From the NCBI GenBank assembly GCA_011109175.1, contig RDEW01000003.1:124001-188000 (forward strand): 64,000 bases of DNA. The letters are read 5' to 3'. Each line of letters starts with the position of its first letter. Position 1 is the first letter of the stretch. The notes under the pieces are model-generated. The model was given only the letters and a program-made list of their open reading frames with translations, ran no database searches and was not told where the DNA came from. The position numbers were made by a program, and so were the translations under genes. Source of the DNA: Dicyema japonicum (Eukaryota > Animalia > Dicyemida). Positions 2,905-62,952 of the stretch are shown here, piece after piece.

Positions 2905-3145
2905 AAATTATTAAAATTATTCCAAAAGACAAAGGGTAACCAAACTAACTAACTCCTGATTAGTTTTAGCGTTCCAGAACTTGTCTCCAGGTAACGACAT
3001 TGTCCCCAAGGAAGAATAGTTGGATCCTCGTGATACCGGCCAGGCATTGGGCGTCTCCTCAGTAATGTGGATCCATTAATGTCATCGGAAAAAAAATAAT
3101 TTAGAACAACTTGCCACATAGCACCGCATGGCGCCACGCGGCCCT
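2905..3145 (-). mobile_element. Short non-autonomous retroposon, family A (5' hairpin head + LINE-like 3' end)
   Basis: Head GCCGCGTGGCGCCATGCGGTGCTATGTGGC; body gaggagacgcccaatgcctggccgg...gaggatccaactatt shared with 8295-8510, 10120-10345, 56776-56990 and 60340-60590. Confidence 0.75.
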
Positions 3146-8294: not shown

Positions 8295-8510
8295 GGCGCC
8301 ATGTGGTGCTAGTGGTTAGTTGGACAAAAATTATTAAATTCATCTTACTGAGGAGACGCCCAATGCCTGGACGGCATTAAGAGGATCCAACTATTTTTTC
8401 CTCGGGTGACAATGTCGTTACCTGGATTCAAGTTCTTGAACGCTGGAACGAGTCAGGATCAAGGAGTTAGTTAGTTTAGTTACCCTTGGTCTAGGAATAA
8501 ATTTAATTTA
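8295..8510 (+). mobile_element. Family A short retroposon
   Basis: ggcgccatgtggtgctagtggt head; gaggagacgcccaatgcctgg body; ggagttagttagtttagttaccc end. Confidence 0.75.
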
Positions 8511-10119
8511 ATAACGGATAAACTTCACCTGTGGATTAAAAATGTAGAATACTAAAATATAAAAATTGTCTAAATTTTAATGAAAATTAAAAGTTTTTGA
8601 ATTAATACAGAAAATTGAATTAAAATATTAAAAAAGTGAAAATTTAACATTTAATGAATTTAAATCGATTTTACTTACAGTTGGCTTCGGTTTGGGGCCT
8701 TACTTTCTGAGGAAACCGTTTAATTTACTAACCCTGGATAAGCTGATTTTGGTTTCTAGATAAAAATCTGCGGATTTGAGAATTTTTTCATACTCCATAT
8801 TTCCAATCTTCATTCCACTCTTACACCCCACGCTATATCCCAATGTCCTCTTATTATGTCAATTTTGTGTCTTACCTCAAAAGGGTGTTTTGTTCCACCA
8901 CAGATTCTCACGCGGAATTTAACTCGGCTGTGGTTTCGCTAGGATGGTTATAGGACAGTGGAACTCAACACATTATGGGAAAATGTTGGAAGTTCAATTG
9001 GTCTCTCTCAAGTGCAAGGAGACCTAGATTTCCCTACAAGATATTGGAAGCTGTCATATTCCACGATTGCTGACAGTCAATCTCGGAGCGAAAAGCACCG
9101 TTAGAGTGTTTGTTGACCATGACACTGAAGGTGTCGACTGGGCCCATTATAGAACGTGCAAAACTAAAAAGATGTGTAGATCATCTAAACCTCAAATCTG
9201 GACGGGACTCAAACCCTCATCATACAGTCTTTTTATCCAGAATGTAGGCTTCAGATATCTCCCGAGTCTTAACGTCGACTATGCTTACGAGAGAAATGAA
9301 GACAAGAGTTTTTATTCATTATGAAGCTACGTGCAAAATAAATGCGTTACCACCCCAACCTTCCTATCAATTAATTACATGGTTAACTGATCAGCTCATG
9401 TAATCAAATGATATAAAATTTTAAATTATTTTAATCTAATTAAGGGTTTTCTTTAAATTTAAAGTTTTACACTCAGAACTTCAAGCATAATTTTCACGGA
9501 GGTTACAATGTCTAATAATCACTTGACCCTATAATTCCTAGAATACCCTGGCGTGCTTCAGACTGGTCCCCAGTTTCCTAAATGTTAGCGAAGCTGGGGC
9601 TAACAGTCCAATTTAAATAGTCTTCAGATCAAGTTCTACATGTGTACCCCTTAACCTAATTTTATTAACCCCAAATATGCCGAGAAGTTTTAATAGAAAC
9701 AGTCAATTCAGTGCATCTATCGAACCAATGTAAACACTGTTAGTGCATGGCCTACTAACCAATAAGGTACACTATCCACTAAGCTGTCTTATTTGAGTAT
9801 TCGATCAGCGTTTCCATCAATCATCATGGTTAACATAGAACCATATTAACTGGCATCTTATATGTGCAGCTTGACAGATGGTCCTACGAGTCTTTCAATT
9901 TCGGGAAGACGGGATTTGAATCCGGCTCTTCCTTTGTTCAAAACTTCGGGTTTCTGATATCTCCCGAGTCCATCACCTCGTCCATGGTCGCGAGAAGAAC
10001 AAGGGGATTGACTCACATTCATCATTCATCCAGCAAGTTAATGAAATGTCCTTAAATAACTGTGATTTCTGCGGACACACAATATCAGCCATTTTAGCAT
10101 AAAATAATAAATAAAATTA

Positions 10120-10345
10120 TTCCAAAAACCAAGGCTAAAACCGAACTAGCTCCTTGATCCTGACGGGTTCCAGCGATTCCAGAATTTGTCCCCATGTAAC
10201 GAAAATGTCTCCCGGTGGAAAGAATAGTTGGATCCTTTTGCATACCGCCCAGGCATTGGGCGTCTCCTTAATAAGGTAGATCCAATGACGTCATCAAAGA
10301 GAAGGAAACTAAATTTTTAACCAACTAGCCACATAGCACCATGAG
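10120..10345 (-). mobile_element. Family A short retroposon
   Basis: Reverse complement of the family A body (ggagacgcccaatgcctggg...ggatccaactatt). Confidence 0.75.
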
Positions 10346-10829: not shown

Positions 10830-12270
10830 CGCGGTTGCTGCCAATTAACTATTCGGAGAAACTAAATTACAGGGTAACACGCCTGGTCCTCTTCTTTTTC
10901 ATTCCCCGCTGGATTTATCATATTATGCAAGATGTTTCTACTCCCATCAATTTATGGTACCTCGAAAATTGTATCCTTGGAGGGAGCCTTGAAGACGTCA
11001 TATCGAAAGTAACCTCGATTTCTGAGAATAGGTGCAAGATTGGTCTTGTGGTTAGTTAACATGACGTGAGTGCGGAATCATTTGGCTACTTCAGAAAACG
11101 AATGGAAGATATTGTCCCGAATGTTCGAACTATTCTCTCTTGAATTCCGTGGATGTGGAATAGAGAAAAATTGAATAAGGGAATCTTTAAACGACAAAAA
11201 GACGCTTCTGTGAATGTTCAAGACAGATTGTTCTCTCTAGACAGGCATGTCGGACTTTTTATGCTCAAAAACTGTCTCCTGCTACCAAAATGCTTTTCAA
11301 CTTTCAAAGTTCCCCTTGTTATCATGAAGACAATCTCCTATCTCTCTTTGAGGATTGGGAATTACCGTACCTTCAGATGCTGTATTAAGTGCATCGAAGA
11401 ATCCTCATAGCTCTCGAAGAATTTTATGGATAAGGTCCTCAACTCTTATTCCGGACTGAATGTATCTGACATTATCGGGAAATGAGGACTTGTGAAAGGA
11501 CCTATACTTTAATGTTCCGGTTGGCGGCGCTAATCAGAATGCGTATTCGAGACATGTCTTTAAAAAAGAAGGAGCATATTGAGAGCACCGGGGATGTGAG
11601 AAGACTTGCATTCCTCAAAACTGCTAGCTTCCACTAAACAGGTTCCCCTGAACTCCTATCTTGTGCCGAGATTGCTAACCTTCTGAATAATGAGGTAGCG
11701 CTACGTCTGTCTTAAAGGATGTGCGGAGCGAAAATTTCATTGTAGTCCTTTGATCCATATGGCTACCATCCACTGTTGAGCAGGTTGAGCGCGGGTCGTT
11801 TCCCAAGACATGCCTGTCTCAACGTGATGTTGAAAAACGCAAATTCCTCTGCTGGCCACCACCGCATTTGGAGTCGACTGGTCTAATCCTAGACGATGCC
11901 AAAAGCCTTTACGGGATGACAACATTCCCTTTTGCTAATGGTCGGGTTTGGGACGCTATGTGTGTTGATATGTATACTCTCAGAAAAAATTTGGCAGCTT
12001 CAGTCTCGAACCCATGCCATGCTTCTAAGCAAGACGAGGATCAGATGAGAATAAAGTACCAAAGTATTACTGAGGTTCACTTGTTTTTCCCATTTGCTGT
12101 TGAGACGTCGGAAATCCTTGGGCCAAAGCTGACGATCTAGTCCGTCGGATCGGCTCAATGATCCAAAGGGTCACCAAGGATCCATGTGAGACTAGATAGC
12201 TTCTAAAGCGTATCGTCACAGAAAACAGTGTGCGTATCTCGATAGATAGCTATCGTCACTCACTCTATTA
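10830..12270 (+). mobile_element. Degenerate CRE-clade non-LTR retrotransposon (RT + RLE)
   Basis: NLWYLENCILGG (YLDD-like), LFSLDRHVGLFMLKNCLLLPK thumb and GMTTFPFANGRVWDAMCVD...FPFAVETS RLE; related 3' fragments at ~21650-21790(+) and ~26290-26410(-). Confidence 0.75.
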
Positions 12271-13019
12271 GAAGTGGAGACGATAGTCAGATAATGCAAA
12301 GCCAATGATATGGTTATGACGACATAGCCATGATGCTTTTCAAGGAGAGTCTGATTATCTTGTTTGGTGTTTACGACCTTATATAATCTGCATGAGTGAT
12401 TTTAACAGAATTTAAGAAACTTGTTTAAATTTTCTACGCTGTAATCTTCGTCATGAATCTTTCCGTCAGCTATTAAAACATGTTTAATAACCAACCAATG
12501 TCTAGTTCTTGCTGATACAAAAATTCCCAGAAATGGACGGATAATAAGCTTGTTTAATGAAATATCAACTTTTGAATTGTTTCTTCGTTACGTTGCTATC
12601 GTGAGAGGCAAGCTGCATCCATTATAGATAAATTTACTAACTCTCGGTAAATTTTGACTTATCTGAATTAATTTAATATTTAATATTTATTTTTAAAAAT
12701 TGTTTTTTAATATGGCAAACCTTTTAATACATTAATATACTATTTGACGCATGGTTGCCACGTTGTTGTGGTTGGTTCTTTTTTATTTTATTTTTCTACT
12801 GTATTGACATATTTTTTCTTCAACTATATATATATTATTGGATTTATCAAATGGTGTCGAAAGCTGTGATCAAAATGTACAAAATATATATATTTTGATA
12901 ACCTACCGATTTGGATTATTCTCCACTGTTTGATTTTCTCCTTCTTATCACGATCTGTTTTGAAAATTTTTAAAAATTGTATTTTTTATGGAAAATATAT
13001 TTTTATTACTATTTTTTTT

Positions 13020-13690
13020 ATTAACAAAATTTTTTTTAACAATTAAACAAATGTCAGTTGAGGAAGCCTGCTGCGTGGATTGCGAACGAGTTCCCTCGGA
13101 GTATGGCTATTCCGATCTTTTGTCTTAGCCATAACCCTTCTCGTTGATCCCTTTTCTTTCTGGCAAACAATCCTCCGAGTTCTTGCAAGAATTCAGCCGT
13201 CATTGGACCAACGGCTCCCGATGATTCGGTCGCAACAGGAGTGAATCGGTAGCGATCCCCGAGGCAAGAATATTTCTTGATTTTTAGGTTTTCCGCGGTC
13301 GAAGCAGCTGCTCCAGGTGTCTGAACAGATTTAAAAATGTTCGTGCTTGAGAACGTGTCTATGCAAGTTGCGTCCCAGACCAAAGATCTTCCAGACGTGA
13401 AGGGGAAAAGGGTCATCCCGTCAGGTCTCTTCCCATCTCCTCGATCAAGACCCACTGGTTCAAGCTGTGCTGGGAAGCCTGAAGCCTTCAGAGCTCTGAC
13501 GATCACATCATTCAGAGCGGCATGACGTGGTCCCCTTCCGGCGCTTCTTCTGCAGGACAGCGGGTGCAATCCTTTCGCATCGGCATCGGTGCTCCTGGCA
13601 AACGTCTAGTCTCAGCCTTTGTCCGATTCCAATTCTCAAAGAATCGTCGTCCAAAAGGTCCCGAGGTTTGGGCAAGGTATTGCACCCATT
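13020..13690 (-). mobile_element. 5'-truncated CRE-clade element (zinc knuckle + RLE)
   Basis: HPLSCRRSAG..RHAALND..DGKRPDGMTLFPF..LVWDATCID..PVATESSG..LRGN; ~95% identical by eye to 20403-20640 over ~200 bp. Confidence 0.9.
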
Positions 13691-17399: not shown

Positions 17400-19666
17400 G
17401 GAGATTGCCTGTTTCACTAAGTGCTTGGAATAGTTTCATGCCGGATTCAAGAGATCAAGTCGATGCCCCGGGATAAACGAAAACCAACCAGGAAAATTCC
17501 TTATCGGTTTCTCAAAAAGGATATATTATCCGGATTGAATTATGCTGTGGGATACTATATCAATAGTATACCCCCGAATACAATGGAAGATATTAAGATA
17601 TTTTTATGCAACACAATGCTCATATGAAACACTACTACTGTTCACAAGGAGAGCAACTGGCTACAATCAATGAATAGAGACTTACAAAACTAAAGAATCA
17701 CGCTGAGAAAATCAGCGCACTAGTTGGGTCATCAGGAAGTCAGAAGTATGATGATTCGACGAAAGAAGCTTTGTGTGCTTATGCATACAAGAAGTCAAAA
17801 AAGGAGATCTTGAGAGAGTGTTGTGTACAAATCAATGAAGTCCAGAAAGGAATTTCGAAGAGACAATTTATGCTTTGAGCTTAAAAAAGGCGCTTTTATA
17901 GGAAAATGAGAGAGGAAGGCCGCTGCTCTGTGTACAATTTTGAGATCGAGGAATGTTCAGCTTTTTTGGAAAAAATGTGGAAGGAAAATGATAAGAAGGA
18001 TATGGGATTCTCTATATCCAAAAGGATTACTGGGGAAGAGGAGACGTATGCTGAGTTCTCGAAAGAAGGATTGTTGGAATAATCAAACTATTGCCTAATT
18101 GGAGAGCGTGCGGTGTGATGGGATCTAATGAAGTAGAAAAGGTGATAAAAGAAAAATCGACTCCTGAGTCATGGTTTTTCGCTGGTGTCACCAAAGAAAG
18201 AGGTTTGTGACTCACCGAAGGACCTTAGACCGATCACGTGAATATCTAACCTCTATAAATTGACAACAAAGTGGGTGAATAGCAAGCTGAGCAAATATAT
18301 TGAAGCATTCGATCTAATCAGTGATATCCAGTTAGGAACTCGTAGAATGTGCCAGGGCGCAAAGGATCAAGCCTTGGTCAACCAATGCATTAACAAACAG
18401 TCGGCCAATTTACGCTCGACTTGGATCGATGTAAAGAAAGCGTTCGATTCTGAGGATCATGACTTTCTGTACGATGTTTCAGAAAACTTATGGATTAATA
18501 CGTTTATAAAAAAAACTTGTGAAAATGTGGACACTTCAACTAAAATTTAGTGGAAAATTACTTGGTGTGGTGAATCTTAGAAGGGGAATATTACAGGAGA
18601 TTCTTTATCTCCACAGTTATTTGTATGATTGATCCGTTGAGTCGACTATTAATGGTAAATACCTTAAAGTGACCATGGATGCTGAGGGAAATACTCCTAC
18701 CTATGCTACTAACCACTTTGTTTATGGATGATCTCAAATTGATATCCTATGAGGATGACACAATGCTAAGAATGATGAACGAAGTTGGAAAATTTTTTGA
18801 TGCGGCTGGACTGTAGCATAATATAGACAAATCATCCACAAATTTTGATTGTGTAGCTAAAAAAGCTATGCTACTTGACGGTCTTGGAGGATATCGATAT
18901 CTTGACGTATTAGAAGACAAATATAGTAACGTCATGAAGACTAATATGATGAAGTATACTTATGCAGAAGTGGAGAATAGGATCGTGATCTTACGAAGAC
19001 TAAATTGAATAGTGTTACCTTCTTCAAGGCAATCAATGAGCATGCGACTTCTCTATATAATTATTATAGGACTCATTGAAATTGACCTGATGAGTTTGAG
19101 GCAATTGACAAGTGTATACGTAGTATACTCATAAATGGTCGGATTCACTGTAATCCTGCAAATAAAGAAAGATTGTATTTACAGCCAGATTTTCTTGGAG
19201 GAGGATTAACTTCTGTTTGTGTGTAAAAGTGAAAGAATACTTCTACATTTTACAATGACCTGCAACACAAGTCCAACAAATGTTTGGAAGAGCAGGAATC
19301 CTACAGGTCGTGAACGCAAAGAAAAATCATATGGCCACAATCGTAGGATTCCTAGCTGGAAAATACCGATTAGAGACAAGCGACTTAAATCTAAAACAAC
19401 TAAAGGATGTACAACAAATGGAGCGTTAGAAAAGATAAAAAGAAAACCTATGCATGCTATGATGTTCAATTCAACAGAAGATCAGAATGTTGATATCAAA
19501 CAATTTATCCAATGGTCAATCGCCGGGAACAACTTTCCAAGGACCGAGGGATTGCTATGCTATGTCCAGGATCGGAATGTTTTCTTCGAAGAAAATGGCG
19601 CAAAATCCAGTCATTGCAATTCAGCGAAAAAAAACAGTGGATCATCTGCCAACAAGGTGTGGAAGA
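17400..19666 (+). mobile_element. Degenerate R4/Dong-clade RLE non-LTR retrotransposon, running into the N gap
   Basis: QLGTRRMCQGAKDQAL..WIDVKKAFDS, RGILQ-DSLSP, FMDDLKL, NKERLYL..LGGGL, QDRN and the knuckle HCNSAKKTVDHLPTRC. Confidence 0.85.
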
Positions 19667-20402
19667 NNNNNNNNNNNNNNNNNNNNNNNNNNNNNNNNNN
19701 NNNNNNNNNNNNNNNNNNNNNNNNNNNNNNNNNNNNNNNNNNNNNNNNNNNNNNNNNNNNNNNNNNNNNNNNNNNNNNNNNNNNNNNNNNNNNNNNNNNN
19801 NNNNNNNNNNNNNNNNNNNNNNNNNNNNNNNNNNNNNNNNNNNNNNNNNNNNNNNNNNNNNNNNNNNNNNNNNNNNNNNNNNNNNNNNNNNNNNNNNNNN
19901 NNNNNNNNNNNNNNNNNNNNNNNNNNNNNNNNNNNNNNNNNNNNNNNNNNNNNNNNNNNNNNNNNNNNNNNNNNNNNNNNNNNNNNNNNNNNNNNNNNNN
20001 NNNNNNNNNNNNNNNNNNNNNNNNNNNNNNNNNNNNNNNNNNNNNNNNNNNNNNNNNNNNNNNNNNNNNNNNNNNNNNNNNNNNNNNNNNNNNNNNNNNN
20101 NNNNNNNNNNNNNNNNNNNNNNNNNNNNNNNNNNNNNNNNNNNNNNNNNNNNNNNNNNNNNNNNNNNNNNNNNNNNNNNNNNNNNNNNNNNNNNNNNNNN
20201 NNNNNNNNNNNNNNNNNNNNNNNNNNNNNNNNNNNNNNNNNNNNNNNNNNNNNNNNNNNNNNNNNNNNNNNNNNNNNNNNNNNNNNNNNNNNNNNNNNNN
20301 NNNNNNNNNNNNNNNNNNNNNNNNNNNNNNNNNNNNNNNNNNNNNNNNNNNNNNNNNNNNNNNNNNNNNNNNNNNNNNNNNNNNNNNNNNNNNNNNNNNN
20401 NN
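19667..20402. other. Assembly gap (736 N)
   Basis: Run of N. Confidence 1.
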
Positions 20403-20650
20403 TCGGGGATCGCTACCGATTTACTCCTGTTGCGACGAATCATCGGGAGCCATTGGTCCAATGACGGCTGAGTTCTTGCGAGAACTCGGAGGACTGCTTG
20501 CCAGAAAGAAAAGGGATCAACGAGAAGGGTTATGGCTAAGACAAAAGATTGGAATAGCCATACTCCGAGGGAACTCGTTCGCAATCCACGCAACAGGCTT
20601 CTTAAACTGACATTTGTTTAATTGTTAAAAAAATATTTTGTTTAAAAAAA
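20403..20650 (+). mobile_element. 3' end of a CRE element, same subfamily as 13020-13690
   Basis: Near-identical sequence, including the stop codon and the tgacatttgtttaattgttaaaaaaa tail. Confidence 0.9.
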
Positions 20651-21073: not shown

Positions 21074-23675
21074 CCCTAGAGAGTCTGACATTGGAGTATG
21101 AGGCAGTGCCCGGAGATGCTATATGGGCAGAGGGTTCAATTGGACAGGGCGCTCTAGAAGTTGTTTCAGCAACTAGAATCGAACCTGTCTGAGGAGGCTG
21201 ACGAACAAGCAGGCGAGGAAGTTTGCTGATTATTTAATATTAGCTTTTTTATTGTTGGTTAAATAAAGTAGGTTTATTATATTTAATCATCCAAAATGTA
21301 AGAATGTGGATTCTACGAAAGACACTCAACTAAAATATATGTCAAATTCATCTCCAATGGTTTAAATATTCTTAACTCACACGTGAGAGCCGATCTTGTC
21401 TTAGTTGATATAGAGAAGGCTTTCAAATCCCGGAAGATTCTTACCGAAAAAAATCTTCATGATGTCGATTAACAAAAAACTCAAGTAATGGTTGCCTAAC
21501 TTAATTAAAGGTCGCATGGGCTAAGTGATGACAAACAACCAAAAATTAAACGTGCGACATCTTTCAAATGGTCCCAGGTCATGCTTCTAATCAAGCCGAG
21601 GAACAGAAGAGAAGTAATACCGAAGCATTACTGAGGATTACTTTTTTATCCCATTTGCTGTTAAGACGTCAGGAATCCTTAGCCCACAAGCTGACGATCA
21701 AGTCCATTGGATCGGCTTAATGATCCAAAGGGTCACCAAGAATCCACGTGAGACTGGATGGCTTCTAGAGCGTAGATCGGTAGCTATCGTCAGAAGAAAC
21801 ATCATGACCATTCAACTCCCTGACTTTTACCATTTTTTAATAACAACATTTGACATTATTGAAAAAAACTAAAATAAAATTCTTCACGCGAACTCAAAAA
21901 TATATAAAAACATCAAACTAGCAAAAAATAACATAACTTGTGGTTCGACAATCAACAGTGATGTTGAAATCTAGATTATTTTTTTGATAAAAATTATAAT
22001 TATTCACAGTTTATTTACTTACCTCAGATCGATGCTACTAAAATCGACATGATGAGAAATGCACATGTTTCAATACCAGTAAAAATACGGCTATACAATG
22101 CTTTCGTCCTACTTATACCAGTCCATTCAAGTGAAGGAGACTGATGGCAACTCACAGAGATGTACCTGTGTGACGCAAAAAAACGAAGAATTATAATTTT
22201 TAACTTACATGTATCTCCTCAGTCCGTCATTGGTCCAAGCTTACGGAAAGAAAGAACACAAAGGCTTTTAGAGTATGTAGACAATTCGTGCAACAGAGGT
22301 ACGTTACCACCTGAACCTTCCGACTGAATCGTTTTGCATTTTTGTTTTAAATATTATTTATGATTAATTAATATTATTATATTCCCTACACGAAAATCAT
22401 TCTTTGTATACTTATTTTTTTAATTAAATTACACATTTTTTTGTTCTTCGATAGTTTAGATACGAGCCAATCTCGGTCTAAATCAGGAAGCTAAATGGAG
22501 GCTCTTTGACAAGTACTGAGAATAGACTTGGAGGCCTCAGCAGACATGGACTTATTCGTTTCTGACGCTCCTCAAGTACACCTCCCGTTGTTCACGACGG
22601 GGACCTCCAAAAGATTGGGAAACGCTCAGAAAAGTAGAGGATCGGGATGGACTACGAGAGCTTTCTTATGATAAGGGAAAGTGGAGGAAGATGACGTAAT
22701 GCCATTCGACGTAATAATAGGCATGTTTCAGGATGAAGATCTACAACGTCTTCCTTCAACAGGAAAATCCGATTTGGAGACAATATTGAAGTCTGAACTT
22801 AACTGAAAAGATGAACGTTATGCACATTTATAATATCAAGGAGTTTCTCCAATCGATTTGCACTTTGCCTATTGTCAATAGCGTCAATCTCTCACATTAC
22901 TTAGAAGTGCTGATTTGTCACAAAGGAGACCTCAAGAAGACATTGTAATGAGGAGAATATTATATGATCGTACTTTTAGATAATTACTATACAAATCAAA
23001 AACGAGACAAAAATGAATAAATCTTATTCTAATGACTATTGCCCCTTACAGTAATCATCCCCCTCTTACAGGAGTTAACTGCCAACTCTAGTCAATCGAA
23101 TCTTCTCTTCCTGGATGTCCGCAGAACCGCCACATGATAGTCCATAGTACAACTGACCATCTAAATCGCTGGGAATTGCTTTTCTCCTCTTGGGGAGTTT
23201 ACCACCGACTTATTCCCTCTCTTCACATTGGAATCAGTCATTTCTTATCTCCCAGCATTTAATGGTATATCCTCACAATTGAGACATCCCACTTCCGCAG
23301 TTAGTCTGAACAGAGATCTTCACCGTAGACCTTACCCCGTGCTTGTGTTCAGTCAAATGTCACAATGTTATTTTTTACTAAAAATTATTGGTAAATTTAC
23401 CGAATAAAAAAATTAAATTGCCTGGAAATAAATCTACCACAAAATTATGATAACATTAAAACTGATAGTCTGCTTGATTCAACAAATTGGCTAACTCTAT
23501 CGAATTACAATTTTGTTAGTTTATATTCTCCAAATTCTGATGGAATTTCAACCAGAATTTAATCAATCTTTAAAATTTTTGATACTTCAAAATCCAATTA
23601 ATCACGCAAATGAAATTGGAAAATTCCAAACGTAATAAATTTTGATATAAATAAGTGGCTGCGAATTACATTAAA

Positions 23676-26419: not shown

Positions 26420-26980
26420 ATTATTTATTTATTAACCCCGGGATCACCGAGAAAGAAAGACAAAAGTAAAGTCAAATAGTTAGGTGATCCCAGTTCCCGC
26501 AACCAAACGTACCGTGTGCGTCTCCATTGTTCCCACTGTCGAACGGAAATGCCTTCTTTGATCCTTGCAGAGCAAGCCGATTGGGGAAGGAAATTTCTTA
26601 GCCAACCGATTTTCTTTTGCGTGGAACAGTGAGAGGCTTAGTGGGTGTCCATATTCCTCGCAAATGCGGAGAAATCCGGAACCAAATTTACGAGTTGTAG
26701 ATTCCGTCAGCAGGGGAGGTATTTTTGTTCCACATTCTGGTCCCAGCATAAGTATCGTTTTCCTTTGCAGTAAGTTTAGTTTTTGGATAGTGGTCTCTGA
26801 TAACGCGAATCTCCACACAGCAGAGGCATATTCCACAGCTGGCGCGATTGTCTGGCGGTATATGGTTCCGATTGCTTTATTGCAAATGGGATAAACAAGT
26901 GATCCTCCGAAATACTTCAGTACTTGCTTTTCTTCAGATCCTCGAAGCAAGTCCGAGACTGAAGAGGCCAAATTTTTGAG
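26420..26980 (-). mobile_element. 5'-truncated Vingi-like LINE (ORF C-terminus + 3' UTR); related pieces at ~1050-1560(-) and 30430-31130(+)
   Basis: IYRQTIAPAVEYASAVW (LINE thumb/C-terminal motif) through TGIT*, then ggggttaataaataaat tail. Confidence 0.75.
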
Positions 26981-29869: not shown

Positions 29870-30385
29870 CCTGCAGAAACTAAATATAATCAAACCGCTC
29901 TTGAAGTTCAGGCCGTCACAGGAATGCGCCCTCGTCGTGTTCAATCAATTCCTAAAGCCGACGATTGAGTATGCTTGTGCCTCATTGGCCTATGGAGCTT
30001 CGATATCAAATTCATTCAAGATCGATTCCCTAATTGGCAAACTGGCACGTCTAACGAATCTACCACCCGATCTTTCCCCCTCCCCCAATGCTTGACCACG
30101 CCGCAATCAAAAATAATGGCTCCGGCTTCATCGGTCTGTGTGGCCAAGAAACAAGTCGTTTCTTCCATTCAAGGCTAGAGGCCTCAAATACACGAAATAA
30201 GGGAGAAAACCCACCCCTCTTCAAACTCTAATGAAAGATGATCGTCGTCTATTCAGGAAAGCCGTGGGTACTCTGGAGAAAGATAGGAAAAACCTCTCGA
30301 TCCTGTTGAGGTGTACCGGGATCACTTAATTAGTTGGTTTACTCCTTTTTTCTTGGTGTTCTCTTTTCGGGGTTATTAAATAAAT
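29870..30385 (+). mobile_element. 5'-truncated copy of the LINE at 32160-35115
   Basis: Nearly identical to 34620-35110, including the 3' UTR and tail. Confidence 0.9.
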
Positions 30386-32159
30386 AATAAATGATAATAC
30401 CTGCAGAAGTTTAACGTTGCACGTGCGCTTGTCGGGAAAATTCCTTTGACTTTGGATGCTTCAGTTGCAGCACTCTACCGACAAACTATCGCGCCGGCTG
30501 TGGAGTACGCCTATGTTGCGTGGAGATTCGCGTTTTCAGAAACTACGTTCCACATACTCAATTCATTATACCAAAAAACTATTCATATGATGGACCCTTA
30601 TATTAGATTAATGCTTAATCCGCTACTCACGGAAGCTACGACCCGTAGTTGCGGATCCGGATTCATAGAAAACCCGCTTGGCCTGTCCTTTGACAAAGAA
30701 AAAGAAAGTCGATTGGCTAAGAAGTTCCTCTCCCCAATCGGATTCCTCTGCAGGGATGAGAGAAAGCTTTTTCGAGTTTTGGCTCGATTGATTGCGGGAA
30801 TTGAGATTATCTAACTGTCTGACGTTTGTCTTACTTTCTCGGTGATTCTGGGGTTCTCAATAAATAAATAAGCCAATCAGACGTTGAGAAATGGCCAGAG
30901 CTTCCTACGTACCTGAAGGAGCTAGGAAACCTATTCAGAGAAAGAGCGGACCATGCAGAGGAATTCAGATCGACAATAAACAAAAGTGCACTCCGATAGA
31001 ATTTTTCTGCAGACATAAGAGAAGACACTTCAGGAGTGGAGTTGGTTTGCTGGCGGAGTATTCGAGAGATGTTGGAAGCTGGGATCACCTCATTTTCTTG
31101 GTAATCTTGGGCTTTGAAAATAATAAAAGCCAATCAGAGGAAATTTGGATGAAACAAACTTGTAGGAAGGATACTATGGGGTATATCACAAGCTTAACCC
31201 TAAGTATTCATATGCTTAAACACGGGGGTGCAATTAACTAAGTAAAATTGGGACTCGCTGTTTATGGTGTGAATAATCTCTGGAAGTTTTCGAATGTTTT
31301 ATTTCCCCTTGACCATCAAGTCTTTTAAGGCGAACTGACTTGGCGGCTTTCACGTTTTCTACCTTTAGCGGAAATGGGGTTAGTGATTTAATTAAAGAAC
31401 ATGTGAACCATTCATTGGTAGACTCAGTCTTGTAGGAAAAATAAATGGCTTTCACATGGATCTAACACTGTATGTCACTTCGATTAGTCACTGTTTTTCA
31501 AGGTTTATCATAATCAGTGGAAATTGCTCTTTTTTTAAGAATAGTTAACAATAACTCATTTCCCTTAACCGATCTTACCTTATATGAATCTGTCACACAG
31601 CTTCTCGAATTTTTGGAATCATCATTGTAGTATACTTCATTTACACTTAATTCAAATTCAAAATATGTCTCTAAAAGACTCATGGAATTCGAGCGTTGCA
31701 GGCGAAAGGGAACCAGACGTTTCAACCGCGAGCGGAAAAACAAAAAATCTCCGGGAAGGATCGCTTACTTTCCCCGTTTTGACCTCTCATCCTTCTCATG
31801 GCTGAATTGGAAATAATTTTGAGTACTGCATGATGTCTCAAGGTCAGTTCTAAATGACATGACTCAGTTTTTTTCAATCAAATAATTTTATCTCGAAAAA
31901 TGACTTGAAAAACTGCTAGATTTTAGCTCACTGACACGATCACTTTGTTAGCTTGTCCCATTGTCACATAGAACTCTATAAAAGTCAGTTATAGAGTATT
32001 TTGAATCCCATAGGCACGTGCATCAAATTAAATCACGGATTTCCTTTCAATTTATAGTTTAGCAGAAAAATAGAATTTTTATCAGTCAAAAAATTATTTA
32101 AAATAATATTGCCGTACACAAAAAACGAGACCAGTCAACCAAGTGGATAATTTTTGGAA

Positions 32160-35115
32160 TTTTCTCGTGGCGTAATGTGGTTACCTTTTGTGGTGGCGCT
32201 CAGTGTAATAATACACCAAAAAGAACCATTTGCTCTTCCCCATCCAGACTCCTTATGTCTGGATGGTATACCTCAATTGGAAACTCGAGATGTTGTTTGT
32301 TCCCCTGGATTCTATTGCTTTCTGGAGATATTGAACAAAACCCTGGACCAGAACCCTTGTTATTATGCAACTCAATGCTAACGGAATAAAAACAAAAATT
32401 CTGGAGTTACGATGTTAATTAGCTAAGCAAAAGATTGACATCTGCCTTATCCGGAAGTCAAAACTTTCTACAAAGAGTACAACCCCACTTTTTCCTGGAT
32501 ACATCTCTATCAGAAAAGACTGCATTGGACGTGGTGGCGGCTTACTCACCATTATTAAAAACGGTTTATCCTTCCACGATGTGAGCTCGCAAGTGGATGA
32601 TTTAATTCTACAGGACAAGACCGTGGAACAAATTTTTATTGATCTTATTAATGAGTCAGAACATCTTATTCTAATAAACATTTACATTCCACCGCCGGGA
32701 TCCTGTCCTAATAACTATGTTCCGAAGCTCGACAAACTGCAAAAAATTCGAAATGTGTTACTATGTGGAGATTTCAACGCCAAACATCCGCAATGGCTCA
32801 GTATTCAGTCGGTAGACAAGAGGGGGAGTCTAATTATCGACTCTCTCGAAAAAATGGTGATTCTGAATCACCCGAATATCTTCACAAGGACACCTGTCCG
32901 AAGAAATGACAACCCAACCTCCCCCGACATATCCTTTGCTTCCTCTAGGATTGCCCCGAAGATTTCATGGAACGTCTCCTACGATTTTCATAGTGATCAT
33001 AATCCGATTATATTAAACCTGAGCCGATTCAATAACTCACGTAGAATTAAAGCAACCTTCAAGGTATATAAGAAAGCTGACTGGTCGAATTTCAAACTTT
33101 TCATTGACCATAACCTAATACATTTTGATCCCACCTCATTTTGCTCCATCGACAAAGCAGTGAACCATCTAAACCATGTATTCCTTCAAGCTGAAAAGTT
33201 GTTTGTACCACGTGCAGTTTAAAAATCCTACAAGCCTACTCTGGACTCGGAGACTCGTCTTCTCGTCAAACAAAGAAACTCCCTGAAGATGAATCATCTG
33301 CAAACCTCTTCTGATTTGGAAAATATAAAATGCTTAAATCAGAGAATTACAAAGCTTATCAGAGAAAAGAAAGATAGGGCGTGGAAGTGCCTATTATCAT
33401 CTATTGGACATATGAAATCCACGAGTCTTTTATGGAAAACTATTCGTCGAATCAAGCTAAACTTATCAGATGTATCAGAATCTTTTTCTGCTCAAAATAC
33501 TGTGCAAGCTAACAACCTAATGAAATATTACGCATCCATAAGTCACATAGACTTCTCGAAATCTCATTCTTGTCACCTTCGGAATTTAATGCCTAAACCA
33601 ACTTTGTGGATCAATTTATTTACGCATGCCGAGGTCACACAGGCTATAGGATCGATGGAGAAATTTCATACGTGTGGTCCTGACGGTATTCCGGGAATTT
33701 TGCTAAAACACCTTGGTAATGTTGCAATCATTTCGAATTGCGTCAATTTTTAATTTATCTTTTAACAAGAACGTCATCCCATGCAAATGGAAGAACTCAC
33801 TTATAATACCCCTCCTAAAACTAGGAAAACCAAAAACCTTATCTTTTTCCTACCGTCCAATTACATTAACATGCGCATTATCGCGCTTAACGGAGGAACT
33901 CGTACTCTGGAAAATTAAACACAATTTGCCCTACTGCCACTTACAACATAGTTTCTAATGTGAGCGTTCAACTACGACATATTTGATTTCACTGTCTCAA
34001 TATTTATCAGAAAGATTCAACGAACCGAAACGCCATCTACGGACAATAGTGGTTTACCTGGATTTCCAGAAGGTGTTCAATTCTGTTTCGAGAACATTAC
34101 ACACAAATAAGGATTTTGACACCACTATTCAGCAGGCTATGAAAAAATGGATAGCTAATTTTCTCTCTGGAAGAAGAGGACGTGTCTGTATAGACCACGC
34201 AAGATAGAGGTCTCGTCTCCTACCAATTGGCGTCCCTCAAGGATCGCCCCTCTCCGGTGTTATTCAACTTATTCCTCAACAATTTACCCTGCCCTGGAGG
34301 AGCAGATTCAATGCTTCTCACTTATGCTGACGACATAATCATCGCTAGCAGGAACAAATACGTGGGTACAGCAAAATCAGAGCTTCAGTCACGTATTAAC
34401 AACCTGGGAGCCTGGTTGAAGTTGAATCGTCTCTCCATATCCGGGAATAAATCAAGTATACAATCTTCACCACGGACAGAAAAGAAAAACATACACTGAT
34501 TTGAACATTTATGGAGACTCCTTACCACTACAGATTCGTCCAACTATCCTGGGAGTGACATTAGACCCTTTGATGACATTTTCTCAACATGTGAAGAACG
34601 TTATGACAAAGGGTCTCAGGAAACTTAATATAATCAAACCACTCTTGAAGTCCAGGCCGTCACAGGAATGCGCCCTCGTCTTGTTCAATCAACTCCTAAA
34701 ACCGACGATTGAGTATGCTTGTGCCTCATGGGCCTATGGAGCTTCGATATCAAATTCACTCAAGATCAATTCCCTAATTGGCAAACTAGCACGTCTAACG
34801 AATCTACCCCCCAATGCTTGACCACGCCGCAATCAAAAATAATGGCTCCGGCTTCATCGGTCTGTGTGGCCAAGAAACAAGTCGTTTCTTCCATTCAAGG
34901 CTAGTGGCCTCAAATACACGAAATTTGGGGAAAAAACCCCCTCTTCAAACTCTAATGAAAGATGATCGTCGTCTATTTAGGAAAGCCGTGGGTACTCTGG
35001 AGGAACACAGGAGATACCTCTCGATCCTGTTGAGGCTTACCGGGATCACTTAATTAGTTGGTTTACTCCTACTTTTTTGGTGTTCTTTTTTCGGGGTTAT
35101 TAAATAAATAAATAC
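32160..35115 (+). mobile_element. Near full-length Ingi/Vingi-like LINE: 2A peptide - APE endonuclease - RT; inactivated by stops and frameshifts
   Basis: QLNANG, RGGGLL, INIYIPP, CGDFNAKH and SDHNPI (APE); CGPDGI, YRPITL, LDFQKVF, GVPQG, YADD and ILGVTLD (RT); cggggttattaaataaataaa tail. Confidence 0.9.
32309..32350 (+). other. 2A-like ribosome-skipping (StopGo) motif ILLLSGDIEQNPGP
   Basis: Matches the D(V/I)ExNPGP consensus with a hydrophobic LLL run upstream, immediately before the APE domain. Confidence 0.9.
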
Positions 35116-41530: not shown

Positions 41531-43659
41531 GAAAACAGCACTTTCACGAGACCCTTAATACTTATAGCTCGCCGTGGGCAGGACGTACACTTTATTTTAG
41601 AGTGAAGAACAGCCATGCTAACCAATCGTTAAAGAGAGCCGAGGTATGTTCTTTTTTTCTCTTGGTTTCGTGTGAGTCCCAGTTGACAATCCGATTCCGA
41701 AGTGGGGTATTCACCGATGGGGGCATCAATCGTCATGCCAAGAAGCATTGTATGTGTGGACCTTTAGTCGGAATGGACAGGAACGAAATTCGAATGGGAA
41801 ACAGTTCTTATGCGTGAATCAGTGTGAGGTAGCTTTGGTTAGCATTTCTTAATATAACAACTGTTTCTGAGCTAGTTTCCCCCCACTGGCTATTTGATCA
41901 AAGATTTTCTCTTTCCCTTTCTGTTCCTTATTTCTTTCGTTCCGTTTAATAGCATCATGGATCCACCTGTCTCAGGTGATGCCCAGTGGCATGATGCCAC
42001 GAGAAAGGATAATTTGTTTTCCCCCGCTCCATAGGTATCTGTGACAAATTGTTCCGGGGTGTTATCAACCTCATTATAGTGAGGAATGTCAGTGAAATGA
42101 CAAACAAGACACCTTTCCTAAAAATCGGGACGGGGTTTAAGTGGGATCTTAATATTTTGACGAACCACATTTTATTAAAAAAACCCAAAAAATTAAAACA
42201 AGTTAGTTCACTAATTTACCCGTTGAGTCACTTACAGTAACACAATTATTACCTTCGGAAAGAGTCATATTGAAATCTAAAAGATATAATTAAGTTATGG
42301 CTGTGACATTGATGCTTCTTAACCTTTCTTTAGAATAACAAAAAAAACACCTTCGATAATTCGAATCATTTTTTCTAGGCATTAAACTGATGGAATACCC
42401 AATTCTAGATTAATTTGCGATTTGTTAAAATTGTCCCTTCCAAAAATCAGTGAGAAGCATGTACCCAACAAGATCAGTTTGATGAACATTTTACTGAACC
42501 TGATGGAGTCTATTTATATTAGAAAATTAGCATAATACACAGAAACGATTTTTGAAAAAAAACTCTTATGACTTTTCCAACTCCTTTGCTCATTCAATAA
42601 GGAATTCTCACGACTAGGCGTTATTCTATACCCTGGTTCTAGGTAGTTATGCAAAAACCATTAAGAAATGACCCACGATAAACACTGTATACCCGATAAG
42701 AATGCCCACGTTTTAACAAAAATCTGAAACATTTGTTTACGAACATGAAATAGAGAAACGTCTAAATAATGAAACCCCTGTGGATTTTGCTTAGTTATGA
42801 TTGGTAGAGGAGGTTGTACTTGGATAGGAAACTATTTGCCAAAACCAGGAAACATGACAAATCTATGAATATAATTCACGAGGGCGTATATGTATAATTT
42901 TATTTATTAACTTTGGGAACCACAAGAAGAAAGACAAGAGTTGTCATCTAACACGTAATCCCTGTCTTCATGTCTAGTTTTCTCATACGGTTTGCGTGGA
43001 ATCCTGGATTAACCCCCATAGAGGTAAAGGTCTTTTCTCACTTATTTGACAGGCTTCTAATCTGACTTCCGGTTTAACCTCTCGTATGGTTGACCATGCA
43101 CATTGATCTATGTCTAGTTCACAGTCAAGTCCAGAACCCGTGAGCAACTAGGACCTCTATTATTTTCCTTGAGAATCAACTCCCCCGCCTCCTTAATAGG
43201 AGTATTGCTTAATGTCTGAGATCTATGCGATGTCAATGTTAGAGGAGACTGAGAAACTGTGATGACCAAGGTCAATTCCATCTTCTCCCCCTTCTCAAAA
43301 CCCGAACTAGAGTCAAATCCTTTCAAATTTGAGATCATAAACATGACTTTTCGCGATATCTACCAACGATATCTGTTTTTCCCTGGAATATCAACAATGG
43401 GCAAGACACTATTTGCTGACTCCGCTCTATTCCACTCAAAAATCTCAACTTTCCTACCAACAAAGAATAACTCAGCACTGTTTTTTTTACGCACAATCTC
43501 ACTCTTCTTGATACCCATACTTTTTCCTATGGGACTTTCACCTTACTCAGCGCATTTTTTTCTCGCTACGGACAACCCCGTTTTAAAAAGATGAACCTCT
43601 TGATGGTTGATGTTAAAAAATTTGCCAAAAATTTTGACACATTGGGAATTTCTGAATGG

Positions 43660-43919: not shown

Positions 43920-44227
43920 AATCAAGCTCCAGCTTCGGATACACTGAGAAAGTAAAGTAAATAACTAGTTATCCAGTTTCCACTTCTACAGAAACAGAGT
44001 CCATCCGGAATAAGCATAAAAAAGACGTCCATAATTGCAGTTGTGGAAACCTCTCCAGTGGAGTGGGGGAGAGCAAATGATTTTTTTTCGTGCCAGCCAA
44101 ACACTGGGCGTCACTTAGACAGGTGGATCACATGACGCTATTCTAATAGAAAAAGAAAGAGAGGAACAGATAAACGAACAGAAAGCTTCAACCAATTAGC
44201 TACGCAGCACCACATGGGGCCACGGGA
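43920..44227 (-). mobile_element. Family A' short retroposon; near copy at 45225-45541, related pieces at 41880-42040(+) and 62270-62590(+)
   Basis: Hairpin head ..gtggccccatgtggtgctgcgtagc; shared ccagtttccacttctacagaaacagagtccatc block. Confidence 0.8.
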
Positions 44228-45224
44228 GATACGTCTCGATTGCATTCCCAATTTCATTGATTGCTCCTTTACCTATTTTTCTAACCGCTCCAGAAGTTTA
44301 GAAGGTGATTAATATGAAGCGATCCCCAAGGGCTGAGTATTTCTTCAATTTCTTTGTTCAGCAGAATCGGCATTTGAGTAGATTCGTAATACTTTTTCTC
44401 AATCATTTTACATGTATCTGCCTCATGGGTCCACTACCATTCTTGAAGTTGCCAAAATTATTTATTTTCACTTATTCCAATCACATTCCTAATCTCTGGA
44501 GCGGTTAAGAGAATGGATTAAGGAGTCGTCAACAAAATTGGGAGTGCTATTTCGGCACAACTAAGAGACACTTGCGAAGGTAGATGACTTTCACACTACC
44601 GTGGTAAGGTCATCGTCCGTGTTATAATTTTCATGATGATAAAAATCGCGTCTTTTCTCATGAACATGGACAAAGTAACGAACTCAAGAAACATCGGAAA
44701 TTCCAAGTTAACAAAGGTATCAGATGAGCGAGGACCCAGATTCGAATGTACTCCCAACATTTACCAACTTTGAAGAACAAAATTCTAGTAACCTCAAAAT
44801 GCTCCGTTAACAGAGATTTCATTAATATGGCGGCTAAGCATAATAATTAGCCATTGATGTAATGAGTGACAAATTCTGACGCTATTGAGGTGACGCAGTA
44901 GAACAGTGGCTCTTAACGGGGGCGCAGCGCTGGAACATAATAGGGGGCGCTGGAATTTTAATTTTTTAGTACGAGGTTTTCCATCCTAAGAAACTTGATG
45001 CAGATGTTAATTAGTTTTTCGTTTGACATATAATTATGAAAACTGTCTTATGATTAATCAAATATTTAGAAAATTCGAAGATGCTTGAAAAAACCTATTA
45101 GCATCATACAAAATATCGCAATTGATAGTAAAATCAAGAAAACCTCATACTATTGAAGAGTCCTTAATATAACTGTCAAAGAAATATTTGATTTAATGGT
45201 TGATTGTGATCAAATAAGTTAATT

Positions 45225-45541
45225 ATTATTATTTATTAACCCCGGATACACCGAGAAAGAAGTTAAAGTAACCAACTAATTAAGTGTATCCAGTTTCCAC
45301 TTCTACAGAAACAGAGTCCATCAGCATAAAGGGTAAGACGTCCATTACATGCAGTTGTGGAAACCCCTCCAGTGGAGTGGGCAAGAGTAAATGATCCTTT
45401 TTTATGCCTGCCTGGCACTGGGCGTTACCTAGACAAGTGGATCACATGACGCCACTCTATTAGGAAGAGAGAGGAGGAACAGACAAGCGAACAGAAAAAT
45501 TAAATCAATTAACCACGCAGCACCAGATGGCGCCACGCGGC
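45225..45541 (-). mobile_element. Family A' short retroposon inserted in the hAT
   Basis: Head GCCGCGTGGCGCCATCTGGTGCTGCGTGGT; 3' end ttaattagttgg...ccggggttaataaataat. Confidence 0.85.
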
Positions 45542-45555
45542 AAAATAGAAATGAC

Positions 45556-45737
45556 CCTCTGAGCAATAGTTCTGTCTCCTCCAGAATTGATAAGTTAATT
45601 AATTCCTCTGAGCAATAGTTCTGTCTCCTCCAGAATTGATAAGTTAATTAATTCCTCTGAGCAATAGTTCTGTCTCTCCAGAATTGATAAGTTAATTAAT
45701 TCCTCTGAGCAATAGTTCTGTCTCCTCCAGAATTGAT
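45556..45737. repeat. 49-bp tandem array, ~3.7 copies
   Basis: Unit cctctgagcaatagttctgtctcctccagaattgataagttaattaatt starts at 45556, 45605, 45654 and 45702. Confidence 0.95.
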
Positions 45738-56775: not shown

Positions 56776-56990
56776 GGCCGCGTGTTGCCATGTGACTACT
56801 TGATTGAATATTTCTCTTTTTCGCTCTGGTAGCGTCATTGGATCCACCTTACTCATGAGACACCCAATACCTGGTCGGCATTCAAAAGGATCCATCTGCT
56901 CATTCAATTGGAGACAATTTCGCTCCCTGGTGACGAGTTCTAGAATCGACCTCAGCTCTCCTGACAACCTGCAACATACGAGTCAATGAT
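56776..56990 (+). mobile_element. Family A short retroposon with a shortened hairpin
   Basis: Starts GGCCGCGTGTTGCCATGTGAC; gagacacccaatacctggtcggcatt..ggatcc body. Confidence 0.7.
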
Positions 56991-60339: not shown

Positions 60340-60590
60340 AAAACTAAAGACCAAGGGTAAAATCAAACTAATTAATTCCTTGATCTTGACGCGTTCCAGC
60401 AGAATCATCACCCAGGCACAGTGATCCAGGAGATGTTGTCCAGGGAGCTGAGGTCGATTCCAGAACTTGTCGACAGAGAAAGAAATTGCCACCTGGTGGA
60501 ATGAATAGATGGAATGCCGGCCAGGCATTGGGCGTTTCCTGAATTTGGTGGACGCCACTTCAATCAACTAGCCACATGGCAACACATAAC
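60340..60590 (-). mobile_element. Family A short retroposon
   Basis: gtgttgccatgtggctag head; ggaaacgcccaatgcctggccggc body; ggaattaattagtttg end. Confidence 0.7.
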
Positions 60591-62050: not shown

Positions 62051-62952
62051 TTCTATGGTAACAACAATTGTATTTTAATAATTCAGATTTCAAGACATTG
62101 AGGTGGATGACGTACCCCTATTGAGCGAATGTCTTGATCTCCCCAAGGTGGATGTGACCTTTCGTTCTTTTTATTGTAGGAAGTGAAAATGATGAACTTT
62201 AAGACATTGGATATACGATGCTTCCGATAGAAGAAGCTTAGGATACACTATTTTTTAAGTTTGGGTCAGCCTGGCACAAAATTTGGGGGAACAAGAAAAG
62301 ATTTCTGCCTGTTTCTTCTGTTCCTCTTCCCTTTTCGAATAGAATGATGTCATATGTTCCACCTGTCTCAAGTGGCACCCAGTGCAAGGGTGGTACGAAA
62401 AATGATTATTTGTATCTCCCACTTCACTGAAGGGGTTCCCAAAACAGCAAGTAATGGACGTCTTTTACCTTTTCTGCAGGTTCTGGATGAAGTTGTGTGC
62501 CATTGGACGGACTCTTCTGTGATAGTGGGAACTGGATACACTCTGGATATACCGAGAAGGAAGTTAACAATTAAAATTAAATGAAATAAACTTTAATTAA
62601 AAAAATTTTAATGGAAAACAATTAAAAGCTAATTAAAATTTTTAATTAAAAAAATTAATTGAAAATTAAATTAAAAAACTCGCCTATAAAATTTGTTTAG
62701 TCTATGAAAATCAATAGTTCGAGGTCTCCCGACATTAGATTAAAGCGATCCAACTGAGCCTTGTGTTTTTAGACTGCATTTTCTAAGAGCCACGTCACCA
62801 GCTAAACCAAATGAAAATAAAGTTAGAATTTTATTAAAAATTAAAATAATCACAGATAAATTAAATTTTGGTTATTTTTTATTATTAAATTAATATAAAT
62901 ATAAAATTGAAAATAAAATAAAATTTTTGAAATCATTATAAAATTAGAGCTT

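Follow-up and report, generated by a model that had tools for sequence, protein, structure and literature searches.

A superfamily of short retroposons in the genome of Dicyema japonicum with a hairpin head probably derived from a tRNA-Arg gene

A short element lying near the start of a 64-kb stretch of the Dicyema japonicum genome (hereafter the window, meaning the whole stretch of DNA that was analyzed) begins with a 30-nt hairpin which recurs at the head of other elements dispersed along the same DNA, and this raises the question of what these elements are and where their common head has come from. An earlier note on this DNA had taken them for an undescribed system of short, non-autonomous retroposons, similar to the RIME and SIDER elements of trypanosomatids, that end in LINE-derived tails and carry a new kind of structured RNA at their 5' end.

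The sequence examined comprised the 64-kb window, 60 loci of about 3.2 kb and one locus of 7 kb (about 260 kb of local sequence), together with genome count tables, and the genome searched was the D. japonicum assembly of 67,542,437 bases in 377 contigs. The draft genome has been described as having 67.5 Mb in 377 scaffolds, a GC content of 36.7%, and 49% repeats (PMC6736024), and the GC content of the window is approximately 37%. A homeobox gene is also found within the window. Of the sequencing runs listed, those that have most of a test stretch in common with it are four runs of one sample, probably the DNA from which the assembly was made, and none is recorded as RNA.

The seven intervals listed in the earlier note all proved, by BLAST and by the reading of the sequence, to be copies or fragments of one repeat group, and the 30-nt head was recovered exactly as quoted at 3113-3142 of the minus strand, with no chance match in 100 shuffles. 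The copies found in the window, and the parts of the best-preserved ones, are as follows.

2905..3145, minus strand: full-length family A copy, 87% identical to the 249-nt consensus over positions 1-245
3127..3143, minus strand: segment homologous to tRNA-Arg(ACG) positions 1-17 (acceptor 5' strand, D-stem 5' strand, degraded box A)
3113..3142, minus strand: head hairpin with a 13-bp stem, a 4-nt loop and 4 G.U pairs (exact match; folding)
3089..3112, minus strand: linker with the terminal T run, which is T8 in the 2905-3145 copy and T4 in the A consensus
3022..3086, minus strand: core module common to families A, B, C and older relatives (nhmmer)
2905..2956, minus strand: family A 3' tail with an AT-rich end, its 3' boundary sharp across 30 aligned copies
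8295..8511, plus strand: A copy that starts inside the head and has an internal deletion before the core (BLAST to A consensus 9-50 and 77-249)
10106..10341, minus strand: A copy truncated at head position ~18, keeping only the 3' arm (BLAST, consensus 18-248, 86% identity)
41880..42030, plus strand: older relative without a hairpin head, which has the linker, the polypyrimidine tract and the core (nhmmer core E 7e-18)
43936..44227, minus strand: older family B copy, 81% identical to the neighboring B copy over positions 9-303
45223..45545, minus strand: full-length family B copy with a TTTT leader (genome hits)
45512..45541, minus strand: B-head hairpin (folding)
45244..45291, minus strand: stem-loop in the LINE-derived B tail (MFE and centroid folds; homologous to LINE 3' UTRs)
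45223-45243, minus strand: (ATAA)n after the B tail stem-loop (sequence)
56776..56946, plus strand: C-type copy with the short head GGCCGCGTGTTGCCATGTGAC, which has one 10-nt unit and not two; its core matches A consensus 67-178
60344..60587, minus strand: C'-type copy in which the head is short, the core is shortened and the A-type 3' region is longer (BLAST to A consensus; sequence)
62250..62545, plus strand: older B-like relative with no recognizable hairpin head, 77% identical to B positions 63-211

At least two families of bodies and tails had been thought to share the one head, and this was confirmed for family A (249 nt) and family B (approximately 320 bp, the A' of the earlier description), both of which are short, non-coding, and dispersed, with stops in all frames across the head. 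The two families are alike over their first ~130 nt, which contain the head, a linker with a terminal T run, a polypyrimidine tract that is short in A and runs to about 40 nt in B, and a core of about 60 nt, and they are wholly different beyond this point. The 30 family A copies aligned with their flanks have sharp 5' and 3' boundaries between unrelated flanking sequences, and the 249-nt consensus was built from these 30 genomic copies.

The 67.5 Mb of the genome hold 536 occurrences of a 20-mer of the head when up to one mismatch is allowed, and none of its reversed control, while a 22-mer from the middle of family B has 1084 occurrences and its controls none. The genome search with the whole family A element returned 761 first-look candidates, and the 40 scored hits, nearly all of which cover positions 3-236 of the 241-nt query, are 81-86% identical to it; the equivalent search with family B returned 1905 first-look candidates and 40 hits of 91-96% identity, almost all of them covering positions 1-313 of 317. 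The repeat copies found in these searches are spread over most contigs. Mean identity of the copies to their consensus is 91.6% in family A and 97.0% in family B; family A is the older and family B the younger, with more than 1000 copies. These families appear to be undescribed, as had been suggested, given that a search of the available literature found no description of them, that the D. japonicum genome paper describes no SINE (PMC6736024), and that only unrelated primers were matched when the motifs of the A and B elements were searched in papers. A scan of metagenomes with one head pattern and one core pattern also gave 0 matches, a result with little bearing on other animals.

The hairpin itself, described as a 13-bp stem and 4-nt loop with a signature of G.U pairs, is a strong fold on the sense strand (-24.4 kcal/mol, z -3.9, for the A copy; for the B copy, -22.9 kcal/mol, z -5.4), while the antisense head folds no better than its shuffles; the G.U signature can be considered real because the strong fold is limited to the sense strand. 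The three 3'-arm changes that had been pointed out in the B head at 45512-45541 of the minus strand are present and are all transitions, and the consensus heads of A1, A2, and B differ only by 3'-arm transitions opposite G or U, by which the pairing is kept. Covariation, which had been expected in such a head, was not significant when 32 heads were compared in a shuffled-partner test, where standard pairs filled 90.1% of the pair cells versus 89.2 +/- 0.5% after the shuffling of partners (35 of the 500 shuffles were as high), and where the pairs with changes on both sides numbered two, which equals the shuffle mean. Transitions are, in any case, tolerated at 7 of the 13 positions of the 3' arm. 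One head variant (locus L043) was considered as a compensatory change from C-G to U-A and rejected, as this combination occurs once in the genome. The evidence for selection on the structure of the hairpin is weak.

The inner helix had been noted as shortened in the copies at 56776 and 60590, and the heads of these copies are indeed shorter by exactly one 10-nt unit: the long head is made up of two tandem units of 10 nt, GGCGCCATGT and GGTGCTATGT, of which the C-type heads hold exactly one. As the first unit, GGCGCCATGT, contains the palindrome GGCGCC, the duplication alone is enough to make the stem. The hairpins of the short heads (7-8 bp) are no more stable than shuffles, with -6.9 kcal/mol (z -0.8) in the 56776 copy and -5.2 kcal/mol (z -0.2) in the 60587 copy.

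No tRNA, 5S, 7SL, snRNA, or ribozyme family was found by Rfam in the whole window at the gathering thresholds, and the A and B copies matched nothing at E<=10, a tRNA model included, apart from one HgcG hit in the AT-rich tail that was judged spurious. Hammerhead and HDV-like layouts were compared by eye with the core and the head, and neither fits.

Rather than a new kind of structured RNA, the 5' arm of the head corresponds to the beginning of the tRNA-Arg(ACG) gene of D. japonicum itself. When the 67.5 Mb were scanned for the 11-mer CCGCGTGGCGC of the elements followed by a box B at the distance found in tRNAs, exactly two loci were returned (G000:C179:34569 and C367:765280), both of which encode the same tRNA-Arg(ACG) of canonical form, its discriminator base being followed directly by a T4 terminator; the cloverleaf and anticodon were confirmed by ARAGORN. 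The head is identical to this tRNA at 14 of the 15 positions from 3 to 17 (shuffle p 0.0005-0.0015), and the two have a common start, the homology beginning at +1 or +2 of the tRNA in most full copies. The G5.U68 wobble of the hairpin is already found in tRNA-Arg(ACG). The same program detected no tRNA within the window or in 59 loci, and no full cloverleaf in the heads of the elements.

The 3' side of the head also resembles this tRNA. The 3' arm of family B holds the motif GCGTGGT, identical to the sequence of tRNA-Arg(ACG) in which the T stem ends and the acceptor 3' strand follows, and the AAT...TAATTTTTCT after it is similar to GATAATTTTCTTTT, the trailer found at one of these two genes. 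Taken alone, the alignment of the 3' arm and linker of A and B with the 3' end of the tRNA is marginal (p 0.05-0.16, with about 0.05 for the linker). An older relative at L003:995-1060, which has a linker, polypyrimidine tract, core, and B-type tail like those of the A/B superfamily, aligns with tRNA-Arg over a stretch that starts at the anticodon loop, takes in the T arm (GGGTTTGACATCC) and reaches a T5 run (p 0.002), and its acceptor 3' strand and discriminator, CGTGGTCGA, match the tRNA at 9 of 9 positions. There is good support for a derivation of the 5' arm from tRNA-Arg, and the linker with its T run is probably a fossil of the tRNA 3' acceptor strand and its terminator trailer.

This T run is a nearly constant part of the elements, with at least four T's within 35 nt 3' of the hairpin in all 30 A copies and in 30 of the 31 B copies; in the A consensus it is a T4 at position 49, and in the B consensus a T5 at position 43. 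The termination of Pol III transcripts would, therefore, be expected inside the element. The promoter is equally poor in the consensus comparison, where the box-A remnant TGGCGCCATGTGG differs from the TGGCGCAATGG of the tRNA by a change of the near-invariant A14 to C and by an insertion of 1 nt, and where no box B is recognizable in the A and B heads, the best motif of the core, GGATCCACC, fitting about 5 of the 9 specified positions. A canonical tRNA SINE inserted into an A head at locus L046, by comparison, combines well-formed A and B boxes with the absence of any T4 over 315 nt. Pol III is the polymerase to be expected by analogy, but with such signals the chances that it serves the A and B families are roughly even, and their RNA may come from read-through or Pol II transcripts instead, in which the hairpin might contribute to the definition or protection of the 5' end.

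Downstream of the linker, the core profile (nhmmer) had 84 hits across the 260 kb of local sequence. A hairpin head precedes the core in 62 of these, and the remaining hits are truncated copies or older relatives with different 5' sequences.

The ends of the copies are those of retroposons. Target Site Duplications (TSDs) of 9-25 bp flank many of the 32 copies listed, and at least 14 B copies have either a TSD of at least 12 bp or a clear shorter one, with 0-22 extra nucleotides usually lying between the upstream TSD and the head. Of 28 B copies, 22 carry the leader TTT(T) upstream of +1 and another 4 carry ATAAG, and because these last leader nucleotides are shared, the transcribed unit is likely to begin a few nucleotides 5' of the head; the A2 copies have a ragged start within the first 2-6 nt.

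It had also been claimed that the shared 5' start rules out a random 5' truncation, which proved too strong. When 22-mers of family B were counted in the genome with at most 2 mismatches, the number of occurrences was 1032 in the tail (286-307) and 1084 in the middle (166-187), 782 in the core (96-117), and 534 at the head-linker junction (17-38), a drop toward the 5' end which indicates that the head has been lost or has diverged in about half of the B copies that keep the tail. The start at the head is preferred and not universal, a pattern that the partial 5' truncation of LINE-mediated retroposition would give.

In a second reading of the head, the hairpin would be a functional RNA element selected in the master copies, either as a mimic of the tRNA minihelix or as an element of stability or protein binding, and not a mere fossil. 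In the minihelix version, the 13 bp would be comparable to the 12-bp stack of the tRNA acceptor and T arm, and RNase P or some other enzyme that handles tRNAs would set a precise 5' end on read-through transcripts. The strong fold with its G.U pairs on the sense strand only, the consensus differences of A1, A2, and B, all of which spare the pairing, and the start of homology at +1/+2 speak for this reading, as does the presence of the long form on the two most prolific families, while short-headed C-type copies are rare among the loci sampled locally. Deficient Pol III signals (a degraded box A, no box B, and the T5 run) point the same way, as they would make another way of producing the 5' end welcome. 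The non-significant covariation, however, speaks against it; the only compensatory-looking pair is found in a single copy, and the pairing can be explained by the duplication of a palindrome together with the complementarity inherited from the acceptor stem, at a 3' arm where 7 of the 13 positions tolerate transitions anyway. In addition, the subfamily leaders TTTT and ATAAG found upstream of +1 in family B argue against a cleavage exactly at +1, and the ribozyme models of Rfam have no match. A functional hairpin of this kind is thus rather unlikely, and somewhat less likely again is the more specific proposal that it acts as a selected processing or stability signal, for example, as an RNase P-type definer of the 5' end by which read-through or Pol II transcripts would be turned into SINE RNA capable of retroposition with no need of a working Pol III promoter, although this, if true, would represent a novel mechanism of 5'-end formation in SINEs.

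The other extremity of the elements leads to the LINEs, three of which end in the window in a sequence homologous to the B tail.

26420..26520, minus strand: LINE 3' end homologous to the B tail, identical at 66 of 81 positions and 92% over the last 39 nt, with TGIT*, a 3' UTR and (TAAA)n
30290..30390, plus strand: LINE 3' end homologous to the B tail, identical at 76 of 101 positions
35010..35110, plus strand: 3' end of the LINE copy at ~32154-35110, homologous to the B tail, identical at 70 of 99 positions

The LINE copy at ~32154-35110 has about 3 kb, with an APE endonuclease at 32581-33222 and a reverse transcriptase (RT) reaching 34499. The last codons are TGIT-stop in the LINE and TGYT-stop at the same place in family B, followed by a 3' UTR with a stem-loop and by (ATAA)n. 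The idea that the bodies of the elements end in LINE codons and a LINE 3' UTR therefore stands for family B, on the strength of these three window LINE ends, but not for family A, the tail of which has only a motif of ~30-40 nt in common with the LINE 3' UTRs (23 of 31 and 28 of 40 positions). The peptide search for a partner LINE of the A/C tail yielded 150 hits, all in open frames of at most 142 aa, and hence no such partner. An intact LINE relative (locus L061) has a compact, single ORF of 906 aa with APE endonuclease and RT domains, and it has the 3' UTR motif CACTTAATTAGTT. The head and core of the short elements are found neither in this LINE nor in the LINE copies of the window, which are the few that were read. 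The B tail can be regarded as the usual loan, by a SINE, of an RNA signal recognized by the reverse transcriptase of its LINE.

A LINE-derived tail could also mean that the whole element is an internally deleted LINE, of the kind represented by RIME, NARTc, and SIDER, with the head as the 5' hallmark of the LINE, and this is what the earlier note had favored. In its support, the B tail has the terminal codons and 3' UTR of a LINE, the frame that ends at the LINE-like stop of family B is open for ~53 codons back into the core, and the 5' junctions are ragged, with extra nucleotides, as is common in LINE-type integration. The 5' arm of the head, however, is the 5' end of tRNA-Arg, and no LINE copy examined has either the head or the core, whether in L061 or in the window. 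Stops are found in all frames after the head, and one head and core are combined with different tails, as in modular SINEs. The translated bodies of the elements, searched by tblastn against the 260 kb of local sequence, matched nothing other than copies of the same elements, and the core was accordingly rejected as LINE coding sequence. An origin by deletion from a LINE is, as such, very improbable.

That the element is no retroposon at all, being instead a DNA transposon or MITE, or a segmental or satellite repeat, is almost certainly wrong, as the inverted repeat inside the head and the AT-rich flanks would agree with it, but the anatomy of the element refutes it, with no terminal inverted repeats, a polar, LINE-type 3' end, TSDs that vary in length from 9 to 25 bp, copies dispersed over most contigs, and 22-mer counts that fall toward the 5' end.

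These elements are non-autonomous retroposons with TSDs, with homology to tRNA-Arg in the 5' arm and to a LINE in the B tail, and they probably form a tRNA-Arg(ACG)-derived SINE superfamily of the dicyemid genome, in which the head is an internally deleted tRNA-Arg. The earlier claim of short, non-autonomous retroposons with a LINE tail is thus upheld by the common head, the TSDs, and the B tail, while the origin that had been ascribed to them, similar to that of RIME and SIDER, is not supported.

The superfamily would have started from a whole tRNA-Arg gene, with its own terminator included. The lineage of A, B, and C would then have lost the central part of the tRNA by a deletion that removed the anticodon and T arms and spared the 5' strands of the acceptor and the D stem together with a remnant of box A. 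This deletion may have brought the complementary strands of the acceptor side next to each other, in the short, 7-bp form still seen in the C-type copies, and the tandem duplication of 10 nt containing the palindrome GGCGCC would have lengthened the hairpin to 13 bp, with later C-to-T transitions giving rise to its G.U pairs. The hairpin would, in this case, be a by-product of its history of deletion and duplication; we infer the exact route of this deletion-then-duplication path.

The resulting element would be a composite of the tRNA-Arg head, the linker with its T run and polypyrimidine tract, the common core, and a 3' tail copied from a LINE. The reverse transcriptase of the partner LINE presumably recognizes this tail and copies the SINE RNA by target-primed reverse transcription, which would generate the TSDs and the 5' truncation of part of the copies. 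Transcription by Pol III, the binding of the tail by the LINE protein, and the target-primed reverse transcription itself are the steps that may be inferred from this anatomy.

These findings are of interest for the biology of the dicyemids: although these parasites are extremely reduced, repeats make up half of the 67.5-Mb genome. In the dicyemid genome paper, these repeats were ascribed, in rather loose terms, to copies of the LINE ORF2 (PMC6736024). The SINE families account for thousands of insertions, which may serve as markers for the history of populations and species. They would also display the stepwise wearing-down of a tRNA gene, with its terminator, to a hairpin head in an element that is still highly active, and the success of family B in the face of its poor Pol III signals is a small puzzle on the making of SINE RNA.

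Among the known systems, tRNA-like structures processed by RNase P and RNase Z include those of the MALAT1 mascRNA type and the tRNA minihelix substrates. The dicyemid head is similar to these in the presence of an acceptor-derived helix of ~12-13 bp at the start of a longer RNA, and it is unlike them in having no T loop and in the leader nucleotides that are kept in the copies.

The RIME, NARTc, and SIDER elements of the trypanosomatids and the R2 SIDE elements have a 5' module in common with their autonomous LINE, and the modules of L1Tc and R2 include a self-cleaving ribozyme. The dicyemid elements are comparable in that they, too, are short, non-autonomous counterparts of LINEs, their 5' module being conserved and their 3' end of the LINE type. 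On the other hand, their 5' module comes from a tRNA gene, is absent from the LINE copies examined, and has no match to a ribozyme model, and their host is a dicyemid, not a trypanosomatid with ingi or L1Tc as the partner. They are not, then, of the RIME/SIDER type, because their 5' end comes from a tRNA and not from a LINE.

The closest counterparts are the tRNA-derived SINEs with LINE tails, such as the tortoise Pol III/SINE with the CR1 tail, the salmonid HpaI and SmaI elements with that of RSg-1, and the eel UnaSINE1 with that of UnaL2. The dicyemid elements are similar to this SINE2 class in the build of head, body, and tail, the head from a host tRNA, the tail copied from a LINE with its stem-loop and short terminal repeats, the TSDs, the hundreds to thousands of copies, and the subfamilies of different ages. 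They are unlike it in that the tRNA part of the head is limited to the first ~17 nt of the tRNA and, probably, the acceptor 3' strand, folded into one long hairpin, and in that the A and B families have no box B and a degraded box A, and keep inside the element a T4-T5 run that is probably the terminator of the tRNA gene.

In SINEBase, the build of a SINE is defined as a head, a body or central domain, and a tail (PMC3531059), and superfamilies with a shared central domain include CORE, Deu, V, and Ceph, as well as the MESC and SOLA SINEs of mollusks and the HCD SINEs of bivalves (PMC3531059, PMC4758252, PMC11481361). The dicyemid elements resemble these in the combination of one core with different heads, or versions of a head, and with LINE tails within one genome; their core is so far known from the D. 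japonicum genome alone, and the resemblance meant here is one of build. Apart from the mismatch between the poor Pol III signals and the success of family B, the system is an ordinary modular SINE, and its unusual traits are the reduction of the tRNA to a hairpin and the retained terminator.

The head of the SINEs, a hairpin of about 30 nt, is likely derived from the tRNA-Arg(ACG) genes found on two contigs of the assembly, which are identical to one another and both carry the acceptor wobble G5.U68. The 3' ends of the two genes read CGTTTT and CGATAATTTTCTTTT, and thus a T4 run lies directly 3' of the tRNA in both.

G000:C179:34567-34643, plus strand, tRNA-Arg(ACG) gene
G000:C367:765255-765340, minus strand, tRNA-Arg(ACG) gene

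In the family B copy at 45225-45541(-), the frame closed by the LINE-like stop can be followed without interruption for some 53 codons back into the core, and two frames of 62-76 codons are open in the C' copy at 60344-60587(-). As no LINE protein match was found for the open frames of these two copies, they may be either the product of chance or a remnant of a LINE coding origin of the body.

Tandem repeats are also present near two of the copies. In the orientation of the element, the family B copy at 45545 is immediately preceded by an array of four 49-nt units (45579-45737), the first of which overlaps the initial bases of the head. Another array, of some 13 units of 15 nt (GACATTAGGCCGACA-like; 57299-57492), follows the C-type element a few hundred bases further downstream.

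LINEs of related families have left no fewer than five 3' ends in the 64-kb window, and the five listed here all have AT-rich terminal repeats and, in the 3' UTR, a shared motif around TTAATTAGTTGG.

12057-12214, LINE 3' end
21618-21815, LINE 3' end
26254-26421, minus strand, LINE 3' end
30290-30390, LINE 3' end
35010-35110, LINE 3' end

Several family A copies (flanks in loci L004, L006, L015 and L025) immediately adjoin a B-type or LINE tail at its ...GGGGTTA(A/T)TAAAT(AAAT)n end, which suggests that family A favours the AT-rich tail repeats as integration sites, giving rise to nested insertions.

The stretch at 19219-20610, flanked by inverted 215-nt arms (13014-13228 and 20436-20650), has long open frames in several frames of both strands, a low GC content (29-31%) and strongly positive GC/AT skew, and gives the impression of repetitive DNA, or of DNA with an odd composition, rather than of a single gene.

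At L046, a locus outside the window, a family A copy has its head interrupted by the antisense insertion of a canonical tRNA-derived SINE with a box A (TGGCATAGTAGTTAGG) and a box B (GGTTCGATTCT), and with no T4 run in its approximately 315 nt.

L046:2766-3080 (= G000:C345, minus strand), canonical tRNA-derived SINE

Since 15 bp of that head (GGTGCTATCTGGCTA) were duplicated on insertion, the D. japonicum genome has a second active SINE family, of the classical type, which is younger than the family A copy that holds the insertion.
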